From Adineta vaga (taxonomy: Eukaryota; Animalia; Rotifera): 64,000 nucleotides of DNA. Position numbers and translations under genes: made by a program. The notes under the pieces were generated by a model. It was not told the DNA's origin and searched no databases. It saw only the letters and a list, made by a program, of their open reading frames with translations. This document shows, one piece after another, positions 17,001 through 57,741 of this stretch (positions are counted from its first letter, which is position 1; each line of letters begins with the position of its first letter). Where the stretch lies: contig CP075496.1 of assembly GCA_021613535.1 (NCBI GenBank), positions 7,316,001 to 7,380,000 on the forward strand, in the 5' to 3' direction.

Positions 17001-18340
17001 ATTTGGAGGGCGATCGTCAATAGACGCATTTGTTGTATAACAAAAACGAAATGTAACTGCTTAAGGCTATCAAATAATCAATAAAAGAAAGAAAGAAAGA
17101 AAGAATGACGAAGTATCGTCTTCTTGAAAAACGAAAGAAGAATAGCTTGAGGTAATTATTCGATAAGAAAAGGAAATTCTTTAAATTTACCTTCTTGTTT
17201 TATCAGATCTTTTGTTCGTAATTTTTCAAATTCTTGAGCAACAAGTTCTTGAATGGAATCAAGTCCATTCTTTTTTGGTTTAATCTCTTGATGCGATTTG
17301 ATATTTGGTACAATTAATAGATCATTTTGTTCATCATCGATTTGTTTATCATCAATTGGTTCGATGAACATTCGTTTAACACGGCCAATTGAATTAAATG
17401 CATTTTTAACAATTAACCATTCACTTTCATTGATATCACCTTCGATAATAGCAAGAATTTCATCTTCAAAACAACCTAATTCATTTGTTCCACTCGGTTT
17501 TATATCACAAATGACTCGAACAAATTTTACAGGATTGATATCGAATGATAACAGATCGTGTTGACTAGATGATACTTGACTTTTTTCTAATCGGAAAAAG
17601 AAGGAATGCATCTATACATAAATTATTCAAATGAAAATCCTACTTGTTTGATTAGAACTACTTGATTTATCTTTTATTAATGTTACAAATGTACTTGGAA
17701 AGATACCAACAGGTCGAAAACTAGTTCCAGGTAAATCAAATTGTAATGAACCACGAAACCAACCATTTGATAAATGTTCATGAACAACTAGAAGATCACC
17801 TACAAAACAAAACAGCAAATTTTGAATATACAATGAGAATAGCTAATTACCTCGACGAAATCGTAAATCTTCATGATGACTTGATTGATAATCTGTATGT
17901 GCAATATACAATGATTGATTATCATCAAGTTTTACTGTTGGAAGTTGGTGAACAAATTTACAAGGTACGAGTCCAGTTTGATTATTTAAACGACCTCGTA
18001 ACCAATTACTATCCACTTGTTCTACAACCTGAAATAATAATATTAGAAAAGAATTATTTGATCATTAATAGAGTCTACAAATGATAAAGCGTTTTGATGA
18101 GCGTCATGCCTGATTAATCATAAATCAAACAATAATCAATAGAAATCAGAAGAAAAAGAATTCTCACGAGTATTTCATGTTTTTGTTTTTACTAATTAGA
18201 ATTCTTGATCAAAATGAGTTCATGCAATTAAATCCAGCTGTTAGATTATATGAAATTACCTCAATAACATCATCTATTTGCAATTCAAGATCACCAATAA
18301 CACCTGTTTGATATGGATATATGACTTTAGCATAGCTCAT
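11085..18340 (-). CDS. DNMBP: Dynamin-binding protein/Tuba-like RhoGEF: 3xSH3 - Pro-rich - DH - BAR - 2xSH3
   Basis: ATG 18340 (MSYAKVIYPYQTGVIGDLELQIDDVIE|VVEQVDSNWLRGRLNNQTGLVPCKFV). DH motifs AISELLSTERDYFRDL, LFGNIRDI, LLRPIQRIVRYPLILN, INEYKRRKEI. BAR region KLISKRHDKLLDYD. Final SH3 ends WWYAEK...GYVPANYIQTA* at 11085. Confidence 0.85.
16178..16400 (-). CDS. Putative alternative first coding exon of the DNMBP-like gene
   Basis: ATG-initiated 74 codons plus 1 nt ending at a strong gtgagt donor. Phase 1 matches the acceptor at 15442 of the Pro-rich exon. Confidence 0.6.
16597..16620. repeat. (GAAA)n microsatellite (a second copy lies at about 17084-17104)
   Basis: Direct reading: aagaaagaaagaaagaaagaaag. 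Confidence 0.8.
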
Positions 18341-18464: not shown

Positions 18465-18899
18465 CTATAAAATCCATTTACGAGCAATTGTTTGAATTTT
18501 TTTATCAAAAGCTCCCGATCGAATAGGTTTATCGGGTACATAAAATGGATTAAGTAAAAGTTTGACGTATGTTTCATAAACTTCTGTAAGAAAATTTTTT
18601 AAACCATCTTCACCCGTACGTGGTAAATGTTCGTAAAGAAATAGAAATCGAAGACCACCAGCTGTGACATATGCTGAAACAATCCATTCATTAAATTTAT
18701 CAACTTGTTTTAAATATGTTGTTGTATTACGCCACATGGCTTCATCGACAAGATCAAGCGCAGCATGTGCAATAAATTGATTTAAATGACGATTATCGGT
18801 TGATGATGTGGTTTGTGCAGTTGATCCACTAAGTTCTACTTCATACACAACTTGATCAGCATGACCAACAATGACAAAATAATAATTCGATGATGTCAT
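18465..18899 (-). CDS. TRAPPC2: Sedlin / trafficking protein particle complex subunit 2 (intronless CDS)
   Basis: YYFVIVGH..., RHLNQFIAHAALDLVDE, YLKQVDKFNEWIVSAYVTAG, LLLNPFY..IRSGAFDKKI are sedlin hallmarks. Confidence 0.95.
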   Translation of the reverse strand: MTSSNYYFVIVGHADQVVYEVELSGSTAQTTSSTDNRHLNQFIAHAALDLVDEAMWRNTTTYLKQVDKFNEWIVSAYVTAGGLRFLFLYEHLPRTGEDGLKNFLTEVYETYVKLLLNPFYVPDKPIRSGAFDKKIQTIARKWIL

Positions 18900-52167: not shown

Positions 52168-52547
52168 ATATGCCTTTCGAAAAGACTTGATTTTTTGTCT
52201 GGTAGATTATTATTTTCTTCTTTTTCTCCATCTTATATTCTTTATATAGATATGTTGTTGAGATACATTATATTACTATCTTTTCTTCTTTTGCTCCTTT
52301 ATATTTTCAACAACAACATGAAGTTTTTTTTTTAAAATAAAAACCTTTGAGCTGACCGTGGATTGAATCAACTGTGTTAACATATTTGAATATATCTTAT
52401 AATACTCTATTTTTGTATTAAGAAAACAAATCTTGCAATAGTTTTTCAAAAGAATTTTTGACTAAACTTCAATTCGTTTTACATCGTGATAAATAGAAAC
52501 ACAGACATACACGATGTTAAAACTTTCAATGAATTTGTTTTTGTTGT

Positions 52548-53294
52548 TTAATGTTGAAGTGTCATGAGCCATCTTTCATGTTTTTTACTATACGGTCGTC
52601 GGGTTTGACCATTTTCAATTAAACTTAATTTTGCTTCGTGCACAACAGCACCTAAACTTAATTGTAAATCCACCATACGTTTTAATGGTCGAACAATATC
52701 ATCGAATAATGTTGGTTTATCTCTTTCCGTGCAACGTAAAGCATAAGCAATCGTTTCTAATGTTGACGCTGTTTCTTTCGTCGGTTGTGTTCGAATAACA
52801 AATTCCGATTTTTGATCAATTTTAACATAACATGTCTTTAATTCTTGTAATTCACTATGACGATGATAGATACCCATTGCTTCATTCCACGTTCCATCAA
52901 GTGCTATGATTGTAAAATGATTCGTTTCTTGAATAATATCATCTAATAGAACAGCATTTGCATTAGGAAAAAGTAAATAAGTATTTGGATTTGAATAAAT
53001 ATCGGAAAAATGTTTTCGTGGAAATTGTCGAGCACGTACAACAGTTAATGATGATGGATCGAGACATTTTGAAAGTATTTGAACAGTACCTAACGGTCGT
53101 TTGATTTCATTTGGATGTTGAAAAATTACAACCGATGTATGATCGAGATGAATAGGTTCTGGTGGTAAATGAGAACAAAGACAAACTAATTCCGGTCGTT
53201 CACAACGAGTACATATTGATCGTTTGGGACCGTTCCATTCTTTTTCAGATAAATCATCATCTAATTCAGCAAGAAATGCTTCATTATCATTCAT
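52548..53294 (-). CDS. DTWD2: tRNA-uridine aminocarboxypropyltransferase (DTW domain), intronless
   Basis: CTRCERPELVCLC, IFQHPNE, LLFP, IIALDGTWNEA, FVIRTQP..ASTLE. Confidence 0.9.
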   Translation of the reverse strand: MNDNEAFLAELDDDLSEKEWNGPKRSICTRCERPELVCLCSHLPPEPIHLDHTSVVIFQHPNEIKRPLGTVQILSKCLDPSSLTVVRARQFPRKHFSDIYSNPNTYLLFPNANAVLLDDIIQETNHFTIIALDGTWNEAMGIYHRHSELQELKTCYVKIDQKSEFVIRTQPTKETASTLETIAYALRCTERDKPTLFDDIVRPLKRMVDLQLSLGAVVHEAKLSLIENGQTRRPYSKKHERWLMTLQH

Positions 53295-53358
53295 CTAAAA
53301 ATTAACGAAAAGAAAAACAGATAAACGAAGGAAAAGAGATGACAAATAGTTTGTTTAG

Positions 53359-54148
53359 TTAAATAGCACTGGTAATTAGATTCAATGAACGATCTGTTAA
53401 ACGAAATAAACATTGACGAATGATTATGTTTGTCCAAAGACGTGACTGAGATGGACCTGTGTATGTTAACTAAAAGGTAATATATATATGATCGAGTTAA
53501 ATGAAGATTTTTCGTAGTCTTTTGTTTTTGTCTTACTTGTCCACTAATATCTTTTGTAGCACCAGTTGATAAACTTCGGACAAATAAATGTTTCTGATGT
53601 ATTCGTTTAAGCATATTTATAAGAAATGAAGAAAACTTTTCATCGTCATTTTCATCATCGGATATTGAAATTTGTGTAATGAATTGTGCATTAGGAAAAA
53701 TGTCTCGTAATTTTCTTTGCATCAATAATATTTGTTCGTCAGAATATTTCAATAAATGACGTAAGATTTGTAAATCTTCAATAAGAATGATTTCCGGTGA
53801 TGCAATAATTTGTTGTTTAATCATTGTACATAGATCATCGATAGTAAATGTTGATTTACCATTGAAATATTGATCCGATATGGACGAAAATAATGGAATA
53901 AACATCAACGGTAATGATGTTGACATGTCGGCTGTTTTTAATACATTACCCATTTTTCCTTGAACATGTTTAAGATGAGAGAATGGTGTTAATAAACTAA
54001 TATAAACACAATTTAATGAATTTTTCAATGCATAACTTAGAAAATGTTCTAATAAAAAGTTCGAATCAAAATCAAAACTTGTTATAAGAATAGAACCGTT
54101 TGATGATCGATTTGTATCATCAAGTAATGCATTCAATTCGTCGAACAT
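53359..54148 (-). CDS. ELP6: Elongator subunit 6 (2 exons: 54148-53537 and 53469-53359)
   Basis: MFDELNALL...FLLEHFLSYALK...PFSHLKHVQGKMGNVL...ILIEDL...VRSLSTGATKDISGQ|LTYTG...LFRLTDRSLNLITSAI*. Removing the 67-bp intron restores the ELP6-type C-terminus. Confidence 0.8.
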
Positions 54149-54513
54149 GATGAAGATGATGAAATGAATTTCAATAAATAATCACAAATTTTTTTTTCTC
54201 TTCTTTCTCTGTCAAATCGAAATAGCAAAAGAAGATTCAGATATGAATCGCTACTGTATATGTTATTGATCTAGAATATAGTGTTGATTGTAGCGATAAA
54301 ATTGATCTTGAGGAGGTTCTAAATCCATGTATAGGTTAGTTAAGTGAAACTTTTCTATCTACCTATATACAATGATTATTTTTCAATCAATTGAAAAGTA
54401 TTTATTTTATTCATAAAGATAATCATAAAAATACATGTATGTAGTTTAAAATAAAAATCGATCAAATAAAACGTTAAAAATCATGTCTTTCATTCATTAG
54501 TTCAAACATAAAT

Positions 54514-55249
54514 TTATTTGCCATAGCCATAGTATTGGGGACTATGATATAAATAAACGTAATTGTAAGGAGTATAACGTAGTTCACATCGTCGACCGCG
54601 ATAATTTTGTGGACATGAACAGTATGGTTGACCATATGTATTGGTACATCGACCGCCATTATAACACCTACAAAAGAAAATAAATGAATAAATTGTTCTA
54701 TTTATTTCTACATAAAGAAAATCTTCATATAACCTACCAGCTCATATCACATGATCTAACGCAATAAGAAGCACAATTTGAACCATATGTATTTGGTGGG
54801 CAAATACAAACAGCTTGAAGTGTAAGCTGATTAACAACACAAGTACCACCATTTGTACATGGATTGCTTACAAGACATGGATTATAAGGTAATGGATTAA
54901 TTGGACAATCCGGATTAGCAATAATGTTATTTGGACAAACGCATACATATTGTGAAGGATTTTGATTTGTTGCTATACATGTTGCACCAGCTGGACACGT
55001 AACTAGCCCACATTGATTTGGAATTACGGGTGGAAATAATGTTGTAGCTATGACATTGCCACATCCTGCTGCATTAGGTGCCAATGACATATTTGGACAA
55101 AGACAAGAAAAGACAACATCTGTTTGAACGCATGTATATGGTGCACAAGTAGCTATGGCAACAGCATTACAAACATTCTGAGCAACTGCAATAGATAATT
55201 GCATGTAAAAAGCAATCATAATAACAATCATATTATTCCACATCATCAT
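54514..55249 (-). CDS. Small secreted protein with about 4 EGF-like repeats and a Tyr-rich tail (2 exons)
   Basis: Signal peptide MMMWNNMIVIMIAFYMQLSIAVA. EGF motifs NPCTNGGTC..CICPPNTYGSNC and WCYNGGRC..CSCPQNYRGRRCE; intron 54737-54668; ends YYGYGK*. Confidence 0.8.
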
Positions 55250-57741
55250 TGTCGCCAAAGGTCAATATGGCAATCGTATCCTTGAAAATATGCTCTTGAA
55301 ATTAGTAGATCGAAGGTTGCTTTTATAGACTTCATAACACAGAATGATTTCATAAATAAATATTTTGTTCGAAAACTTAATTCCAAATTCAACATGATTA
55401 TCAAAAGGTTTTGGATTCTGAAATAAAATTCAAAATTTTGACCGGAATCTTTCAAAGAGATGTTATTTGATATGTTTGCTTTTGTATTAAGATATGAGAA
55501 AGAAAAACAAGATAAATTTGATAGATATTTCTTTCTTTATTCATTTCTTAAATACAGAATAAATTGAGTTAATATATGAAATTTGATCCATAGATAATTT
55601 CGATGTACTATTTAGCTATTTGAAATAAGTCAAACACAAATAAATGTGTTCTATTCAAACATATCTTTATTAGTAAAACTAAATCCTGACATCAATCTTC
55701 TTAAGTAACTGATCATTTGAAAAGTAGAAGTTCCTAGTGTTGTCTTTTCTATCGAAATGTAAATACTTGTTTTTATCATAAATAAAAGGAAAAAAAACAA
55801 CAACCTAAATGTCAGGTTTGAACTTATATCATTTATCATTATAGTCATGATTGCGTTCCCACTGTCTTTTCGTATAATCAATATTATATCTAATGATGAT
55901 GTGTGCATATTTTGCTTCATGGTTGTCGATATGTAATGATTGTAAACAAAATATACCTTCATATCTGTACCTGTATACGAAAAAAAAAGTTACCCAAGTT
56001 ATTATTTGTTTATTCATTTTGATTGACACGAGCCCTTGATAGATATGATTTTATCTATAGGCTTAACAGATATTGAAAAAATGCATAGAATGGAACGTGA
56101 AAATTGATCTAATACAGTTATTATCCTTGATATTTCACATACGTTTTCATAAACAATTAACTCATTTGTATGAAAAGTCAGCGAGTATAATTTTGTTCTT
56201 TGTCAAGATTTTCATGGAAGATATCTTTTATCACAATGTACTTTTACCAGTCTTATATCACGTTTTATAGAGATAATATATGAAATATACGTGAGAACAA
56301 CAAATTCAAGGTTTCCGTCCTGAATAATAAATCGACGACAATGATTATATCTTATCGTACGTGATTGAAACTATAACACTCATGCAGACTATTATTTCAA
56401 GGAGACGAAGGTGTCAAGAATGAATAAATACAACATGTTTACTTCATTGCACATATCTTTGCAGATGAAATTACGTCAGATTCTAATGCTATGTTATCGC
56501 TCTTTATTTATTAACTTAAACTAAACAAAATCCTTACACTTATCTTTTTGTCTATTATCTTATTCATCACACACATAGGCATACACACACATGCTCACTC
56601 TCTTTTTTTTTCCTCTTAAGACACATCGAATGTCACACATATATCAAATAAGATCATAATAACTCGAATAGTCTACGTACAAAAAAAAAGAAAAGAAATA
56701 GGAGGAGAAGAATAGTAGATAGAGCACAAGAACAAAAGAATAATGACAAGATACAAACAAAAGACAAAGAAGAAAAAAATCACACGAACATAAAGAAAAA
56801 GACGAACAAGTAATCATCATAATAGAAAAGAACACCAAACATGGCCTTTGGTCATCATTGCGCACAAGAAAGGAAAGAAAAGAAAAGAAAAGAAAACGAC
56901 GAAGACATGTCTCTTAAATATCACTCATCTCTTCGAATTTCATCTCAGACACTCTTCGAAAATACAAGGATTTAAGACCGGTATAGATGAAAAACATGCG
57001 AAGAAGAGTCTATGTTCACAAATGATACGAATATGTTATGCTTCGCAAAATCAAGGAGATTACATACATGTACTTATATACATATGAAAAATATTCGTTG
57101 CCTGAACTTGCTCGATGGCTACATTTAATGAATCGAGCAAATAGAGAAAGAAAATCAACAAACAAAATGGCACGCGAACAGAGAGGCAAATATATATATA
57201 TATTTACAATGGAACAACAACGAAAAGTAACCAAAAAAAAAAGAAAAAAAACGCTTTAATAAACAAGAGACAGACTATAACAAAATTTTAGTCGGAGCAT
57301 ACATTAGAGATAGAAAAATAAACTAGAGACAGAAATAAGCTTAAATTTGAGACTTAACGGCTCGAATTCATATTATTGTTTATCTCATTTTCAAGTCTAC
57401 AATTCGACCTCTTTCTATGTATAACGTCTCGCGACTGACCCTGATGTTAACAAGAGAAAAAAGAAACAGAAAATCTGTACAACAAAGAAAAAAAGAAGAG
57501 AAAAAGAATACTGATGAAGGGAAGAACAAAGAAAGAAAAAAATCCATTATGTGTCAGATCGAAATCACTGGGTACGAAAAACGATCTATCCTATTCGCGT
57601 TTTTCTGATCTAAGGATTCATACGGGAAGAGAAAGAAAGCAAGAAAGAGGGAAAGGAAAAAAAAGGAAAAAAAAATGTATAAAAGTAAAACAAATAAACA
57701 AAAGAAAAAAACCAAGGACACTTTTTTTTTGCTTTGATATT

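Follow-up and report, generated by a model that had tools for sequence, protein, structure and literature searches.

The closest described counterparts of the gene pair considered here are the operons of Ciona intestinalis, in which genes on the same strand lie less than 100 nucleotides (nt) apart, the downstream cistron starts at an AG splice acceptor, and one spliced leader serves monocistronic and operonic genes alike. Most Ciona operons have no intercistronic DNA and most of their upstream cistrons have no AATAAA (Satou et al., 2006, PMC1488885), an absence that is typical of upstream cistrons in the operons of both Ciona and Oikopleura (PMC1488885), and the member genes are not obviously co-functional. 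We describe a locus that resembles these operons in most of these respects in the bdelloid rotifer Adineta vaga, where, in a stretch of 64,000 nt (the window, to which all coordinates refer), the gene for the Elongator protein ELP6 is followed after a 64-nt spacer by a gene for a DTW-domain protein, by sequence a tRNA-uridine aminocarboxypropyltransferase, all three lying on the minus strand. The likeness has its limits, in that the upstream poly(A) site in Ciona has been mapped onto the acceptor AG and dicistronic complementary DNAs (cDNAs) have been cloned (PMC1488885), unlike at the rotifer locus, and the two animals belong to different phyla.

Operons of the spliced leader 1 (SL1) type in Caenorhabditis elegans, with little or no intercistronic DNA, offer a second comparison, but the examples described have a canonical AAUAAA in the upstream cistron (PMC1488885), unlike A. 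vaga, and C. elegans has a separate SL2 class of leader, whereas a single leader sequence was searched in the rotifer. A gnathiferan relative of the rotifers, the chaetognath Paraspadella gotoi, has operons, defined there by genes on one strand at distances below 250 bp of which at least one carries a leader, and it has no operon-specific leader (PMC12460157). The chaetognath study drew on RNA evidence from the whole genome; the rotifer case concerns a single locus, for which the RNA evidence comes solely from a relative.

Spliced-leader trans-splicing in rotifers has been known since 2005. It is well established in the literature (cited in PMC3795323), and a 2025 paper on chaetognaths names rotifers in passing among the lineages with trans-splicing and operonic transcription (PMC12460157). 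The paper on SLIDR and SLOPPR states that rotifers were still without any report of operons or polycistronic mRNAs (PMC7986045), and our literature search found no later report of a rotifer operon.

We propose, at a probability of roughly 55%, that ELP6 and the DTW gene form a two-gene operon resolved by the spliced leader, of the type seen in Ciona and in the SL1 operons of C. elegans. The original prediction for this DNA, made from its letters alone, had suggested a functionally coherent dicistronic unit. The dicistronic part of that suggestion gains from three lines of evidence, namely the conservation of the pair and its acceptor across bdelloids, the 3' end of the leader on the DTW ATG in an RNA-like contig from a relative, and the position of the sole conserved non-coding block upstream of ELP6; the functional coherence does not stand up equally well.

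Two Separate Genes on One Strand

The window is part of the chromosome-scale contig C4 of a haploid assembly (G000) that comprises 100.8 Mb in six contigs. ELP6 exon 1 (54148..53537, minus strand; 612 nt, 204 codons) matches the Pfam family PF09807 (ELP6) at E=4e-16, with a score of 59.7 bits (up to 62.8) against a curated cut-off of 31.6. It is followed by a phase-0 intron of 67 nt (53536..53470, minus strand; GTAAGA...TTTTAG, with the donor GT at 53536-53535) and by exon 2 (53469..53359, minus strand), which holds 36 codons and the stop codon TAA (53361-53359). The NCBI protein I4U23_019340 [Adineta vaga] (P0018), of 240 aa, is 100% identical over exon 1, and its C-terminus is that of our exon-2 model, which also fits the C-terminus of the annotated ELP6 proteins of Rotaria; the UniRef name for the Rotaria sordida orthologue is Elongator complex protein 6. 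A sequence search of the PDB with ELP6 gave zero matches at E<=0.01, and a RecA-like fold and an assembly with ELP4 and ELP5 are properties of the family that are putative for the rotifer protein.

The DTW gene (53294..52548, minus strand; 248 codons in one exon) encodes a DTWD2-like protein that covers the full profile of PF03942 (positions 1-195 of 195) at E=2.5e-42, with 145 bits against a cut-off of 33.7. Each gene is single-copy, with no paralogue of either in the assembly, and the DTW gene is the only one with a DTW domain found there. ELP6 and the DTW gene are two separate, intact genes. The families named in the original prediction are borne out by Pfam matches above both curated cut-offs, and its correction for the ELP6 intron, which put 64 nt between the ELP6 stop at 53359 and the DTW ATG at 53294, holds to the base.

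Conservation of the Pair and of the Acceptor

The spacer between the genes (53358..53295, minus strand) would contain the 3' untranslated region (UTR) of ELP6 and the tract leading to the acceptor. Its pyrimidine content is 73% overall and 85% at positions -23..-4, and AATAAA is absent from its 64 nt in A. vaga. It ends in the 3' splice acceptor TTTTAG (53295..53300, minus strand; AG at 53296-53295), which abuts the DTW ATG and which we take as the predicted site of spliced-leader trans-splicing. The pyrimidine tract, the missing AATAAA and the abutting TTTTAG had all been read correctly beforehand. An ATTAAA in ELP6 exon 2 was considered as a poly(A) signal and rejected; it arises from Leu-Asn codons and is lost where the codons differ.

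We compared the locus among 13 distinct bdelloid lineages (L003, L004, L005, L006, L007-L010, L011, L012, L017, L018/L025/L102, L021, L022 and L023/L024, L017 being the assembly GCA_905252715 of Rotaria sordida); their DTW proteins share 71-91% identity with that of the window. ELP6 is followed by the DTW gene on the same strand in all 13, and in Rotaria sordida the submitters annotated ELP6 and DTW as two genes, 85 nt apart. The spacing, which is 64 nt at the A. vaga locus and ranges over 35-93 nt across the lineages, with values as short as 35-41 nt in some, lies under the limit of about 100-250 nt by which close same-strand neighbours are recognized as candidate operons. The spacer cannot be aligned across the 13 lineages except for its last 6 nt, where TTYYAG|ATG is invariant. 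The base at -3 of the DTW ATG is a pyrimidine in every lineage and, together with the conserved TTYYAG, this identifies a 3' splice site signature rather than a translation-start context. In the window YAG directly precedes 3.0% of all ATGs and TTYYAG only 2 of 2998, and the acceptor exceeds chance expectation because of this rarity and its invariance among relatives. The window holds 24 open reading frames (ORFs) with 120 codons or more, and YAG directly precedes the first ATG in only two others of these, at 17156-17611 and 18465-18899 (minus strand).

The neighbouring ELP6 intron behaves differently. Its position and phase are kept in nine lineages while its length ranges from 43 to 1970 nt, or 46-fold, so that the spacer, at 35-93 nt, looks constrained in length and the intron next to it does not. 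The intron measures 43-67 nt in most lineages, 487 nt in L007 (2970-3460) and 1970 nt in Rotaria sordida (L017:3620-5580), which suggests that the two long introns contain insertions. The peptide encoded by exon 2, the 36-aa C-terminus of ELP6, is strongly conserved in all lineages.

Outside the bdelloids, a contig with a DTW gene (L020; 34% identical) is too short and shows neither ELP6 nor the acceptor, and a second (L026; DTW protein 39% identical) has no ELP6 nearby. The other metagenome matches to the DTW protein are distant (<=35% identical), and the tree of DTW proteins is poorly resolved, with no starred branches.

The Spliced Leader on the DTW mRNA of a Relative

The published rotifer spliced leader is GGCTTATTACAACTTACCAAGAG (PMC3795323, Table 1), and the form of it expected at the 53294 junction is GCTTATTACAACTTACCAAGAG. 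The leader followed by a GT donor occurs in 42 copies in the A. vaga genome, against none for a reversed control. These leader genes are clustered on contig C5, and many stand in head-to-head pairs with ~130 nt between the leader starts (examples are C1:2551158-2551338, C5:9884354-9925971 and C5:10912929-10934589). All 42 copies read TGCTTATT..., as against GGCTTATT... in the published leader of 23 nt, and hence A. vaga may have a leader of 22 nt or one with a different first base.

RNA evidence for the use of the acceptor comes from one related lineage (L018/L025/L101/L102). Three of its contigs, L025 (the same as L103; JGI 3300002346), L101 (SRR5248463) and L102 (SRR5248462), the last two from Logan assemblies, encode an identical DTW protein (P0012), 79% identical to that of A. 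vaga. L101 and L102 are clearly cDNA-derived, judging by a 434-aa SUCLA2-like ORF downstream that runs uninterrupted in them, whereas the genomic gene is split by introns both in the window and in L004. L025 contains ELP6 minus exactly the 62-nt intron that is present in the near-identical genomic contig L018, with a canonical junction between exon 1 and exon 2, and continues after the spliced ELP6 with 33 nt of spacer, CTTACCAAGAG and the DTW ATG. The element CTTACCAAGAG corresponds to the 11 nt at the 3' end of the leader, and the probability of a chance match is ~4e-6 with the AG taken as fixed. It is because the intron is missing and the leader fragment is present, and not from the sample record, that L025 looks RNA-derived. 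L102 carries the unspliced form, with 34 nt of spacer joined to DTW through ...CTTCTAG|ATG, and L101 starts exactly at AG|ATG, as expected if two upstream forms diverge at that point of the assembly graph. Between them L025 and L102, which share 27 nt, account for the entire spacer. No more than 7 nt thus separate the end of the ELP6-derived sequence from the acceptor, and by L102 the start of the DTW precursor cannot lie more than 6 nt downstream of the ELP6 stop.

These contigs show that a leader-joined DTW mRNA exists in the relative, that the ELP6 intron is cis-spliced normally and that ELP6 sequence extends close to the acceptor. In the related bdelloid lineage the downstream cistron thus bears the spliced leader at the acceptor beside the upstream gene. 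Given that TTYYAG|ATG is invariant and that its genome has 42 leader genes, A. vaga itself probably adds the leader to its DTW mRNA as well.

A conserved acceptor alone cannot tell cis- from trans-splicing, and the TTTTAG of A. vaga could in principle end an ordinary intron in the DTW 5' UTR, with a non-coding first exon lying within or before ELP6 and no leader involved in this species. We regard this as very improbable, since the contig of the relative has leader sequence rather than an upstream exon at the acceptor, and neither a conserved donor nor a non-coding exon was seen in the spacer or in the ELP6 intron.

A Candidate Upstream Promoter and a Proposed Mechanism

When the 180 nt before ELP6 were aligned for nine lineages, a conserved non-coding block (54247..54320, minus strand) emerged 100-170 nt upstream of the ELP6 ATG. 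Its elements are ATCCTCC..CAA, CGCTAC(A/T)RTC / CGCTACAATC and RT(A/T/G)GCGAY, in the last of which GCGA is invariant. Two of these elements make up an inverted pair at 54247-54297, ATCGCTAC / GTAGCGAT, with about 35 nt between the two halves. The motif is uncommon elsewhere in the window, and the block is probably a promoter or a transcription-factor site, making it a candidate promoter element for the locus. It is the only conserved non-coding block found there, comparable non-coding conservation being absent from the ELP6 intron and, with the exception of the acceptor, from the spacer.

On the operon model, transcription would start at a promoter upstream of ELP6, marked by this block, and would then cross ELP6 and the 64-nt spacer and enter the DTW gene. 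The ELP6 intron would be removed by ordinary cis-splicing, as it is in the relative, and the ELP6 mRNA would end somewhere within the spacer. The 5' end of the DTW mRNA would be generated by trans-splicing of the 22-23-nt leader onto TTTTAG|ATG, as seen in the relative and as expected in A. vaga from the invariant acceptor. The 5' UTR of the mature DTW mRNA would then consist of the leader alone, 22-23 nt without an AUG, and position -3, a pyrimidine in the genome, would become a purine of the leader (GAG|AUG).

Several observations weigh against an operon. Contig L025 is a mosaic (L025:735-772), with a CTT microhomology at the point where the spacer meets the 11-nt leader end. The assembly may have merged spliced with unspliced reads into one consensus, or the join may be an artefact of template switching, and because the spacer runs straight into the leader fragment the contig cannot be counted as a dicistronic transcript. 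No single clean contig spanning both cistrons was present among the contigs returned. The gene directly upstream of ELP6, which encodes an EGF-like cysteine-rich secreted protein (54526-55258, minus strand), is likewise kept in every locus across an ordinary intergenic region (roughly 200-640 nt by a rough reading of gene calls), and conserved adjacency is for this reason not specific to the ELP6-DTW pair. AATAAA stands right after the ELP6 stop in five lineages (L007, L011, L021, L022 and L023), unlike in Ciona, and ELP6 3' ends may accordingly form well before the acceptor; with AATAAA in these five and none in A. vaga, the 3'-end signal of ELP6 is variable. Finally, ELP6 exon 1 contains a peak of synonymous identity from about codon 103 to codon 126-128 (53765-53842), with a maximum of 0.86 against a mean of ~0.55 (p about 0.03 by permutation, with no correction for the ancestry that the lineages share). 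This peak could reflect an embedded regulatory element, an internal promoter or noise. It includes ATTGCATCA, coding for Ile-Ala-Ser and kept in 6 of 7 lineages, a sequence that equals the core of the C/EBP-ATF amino-acid response element.

These points bear on the most serious competitor of the operon, in which ELP6 and the DTW gene are transcribed independently, the promoter of the DTW gene lies inside the body of ELP6, a short outron is trans-spliced and the close spacing is inherited microsynteny. Trans-splicing needs no operon, the EGF-like neighbour has likewise kept its position, the exon-1 peak could be an embedded regulatory element, and L102 only sets a downstream limit for the start of the DTW precursor, 6 nt past the ELP6 stop. 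Yet with a spacer of 35-41 nt in some lineages both promoter and start would have to sit within ELP6 coding sequence, and neither the intron nor the spacer shows non-coding conservation other than the acceptor. The ELP6 intron of A. vaga has a TATA-like run, which was considered as a DTW promoter and rejected, as the introns of the other lineages lack it. Measured among pairs with the same residue, ELP6 exon 2 has a synonymous-codon identity of 0.595, close to the values for exon 1 (0.552) and DTW (0.559); exon 2 thus shows no excess of synonymous constraint and hides no strongly constrained element. The spacer, moreover, stays at 35-93 nt while the intron varies 46-fold. Hence we consider two independent promoters to be possible, but clearly less probable than the operon.

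No Evidence for an ELP6-DTWD2 Fusion Protein

The original prediction had also raised the possibility that the donor of ELP6 exon 1 (53536) is spliced in cis directly to the acceptor at 53294, skipping exon 2 and giving a functional in-frame fusion of ELP6(1-204) with DTWD2. Donor and acceptor are indeed of phase 0 in every lineage, such that the join would always be in frame, but any phase-0 intron combined with an acceptor next to an ATG would give this result. A loose analogy might be seen in the human DTWD2 isoforms, which have alternative first exons and differ in localisation (PMC6895100). We searched for fusion proteins with region 1-204 of the unspliced 285-codon ORF as query, which lets proteins of fusion length show, and searched the exons apart; P0018 stood in for the spliced ELP6. 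No match of ~452 aa appeared in this search, which admitted matches of 157-499 aa, and the annotated rotifer ELP6 proteins are all of 240-243 aa and all contain exon 2. In the search with the spliced ELP6 protein the exon junction was found only in NCBI eukaryotic gene models, the other matches being genomic read-through ORFs. The sole contig that spans ELP6 (L025) has the canonical junction between exon 1 and exon 2, and its leader fragment shows the acceptor used in trans. The fusion would in addition delete the conserved 36-aa C-terminus encoded by exon 2. We therefore give a functional fusion almost no credence, and of the original suggestion only the matching phases survive; a trace fusion by-product may be formed.

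A more elaborate version of the operon model holds that the pair is an operon that predates the bdelloid radiation, in which linkage has been selected for co-regulation by one promoter and a minor exon-skipped ELP6(1-204)-DTWD2 product might form. Taken as a whole, we find this version unlikely.

The DTW Enzyme and the tRNA-Modification Theme

The DTW protein matches PDB entry 9kyt ('tRNA-uridine aminocarboxypropyltransferase') at E=5e-7, and its DGTW motif (D133, G134, T135 and W136) and N-terminal cysteines (C28, C31, C38 and C40) are invariant. It thereby shares the DTW domain, the DGTW motif and the N-terminal cysteine cluster with human DTWD1 and DTWD2 and with Escherichia coli TapT (Takakura et al., 2019, PMC6895100), but only one DTW gene was found in the rotifer genome, in contrast to the human pair DTWD1/DTWD2. 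A look-up of the exact A. vaga DTW sequence returned no record, from a collection that may leave out entries of the window's own genome. An NCBIfam search of the protein gave no match, the atlas clusters and the PDB name its relatives only generically as tRNA-uridine aminocarboxypropyltransferases, and no named non-rotifer relatives were returned in the DTW protein searches. We call the gene DTWD2-like, the assignment to the DTWD2 rather than the DTWD1 subfamily being putative.

Elongator acts at the wobble uridine, U34. DTWD enzymes add acp3 (the 3-amino-3-carboxypropyl group) at U20/20a in the D-loop of tRNA (PMC6895100). The two enzymes of the pair thus differ in position, chemistry and cofactor use, and the functional coherence that was claimed for them in the original prediction is weak. 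By a rough estimate, a compact genome holding perhaps a hundred genes for tRNA modification would by chance contain about one such adjacency, and the pairing of two tRNA-uridine modification enzymes at this locus is most likely incidental.

Neighbouring Genes Downstream

Downstream of the DTW gene lies a convergent gene for the beta subunit of succinyl-CoA ligase, with ~190 nt between the stop codons of the two genes in the cDNA-derived contigs. Contigs L101 (750-940) and L102 (780-970), corresponding to about 52170-52548 of the window, run from the DTW mRNA into that of the convergent gene, and the 3' UTRs of these two genes probably overlap or abut. The succinyl-CoA-ligase gene has been lost from the locus in L005 and L017.

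Implications for Possible Operons in Bdelloids

The ELP6-DTW pair provides a compact and easily assayed test case for operons of the Ciona type in bdelloid rotifers. It has this value because the pair is conserved, the DTW coding sequence starts exactly at a trans-splice acceptor, and there is evidence for the leader in a relative. The pairing of two tRNA-modification genes would matter only if their co-regulation were shown. If the operon model is true, the locus would bear on how often operons have evolved in animals and on the annotation of bdelloid genes.

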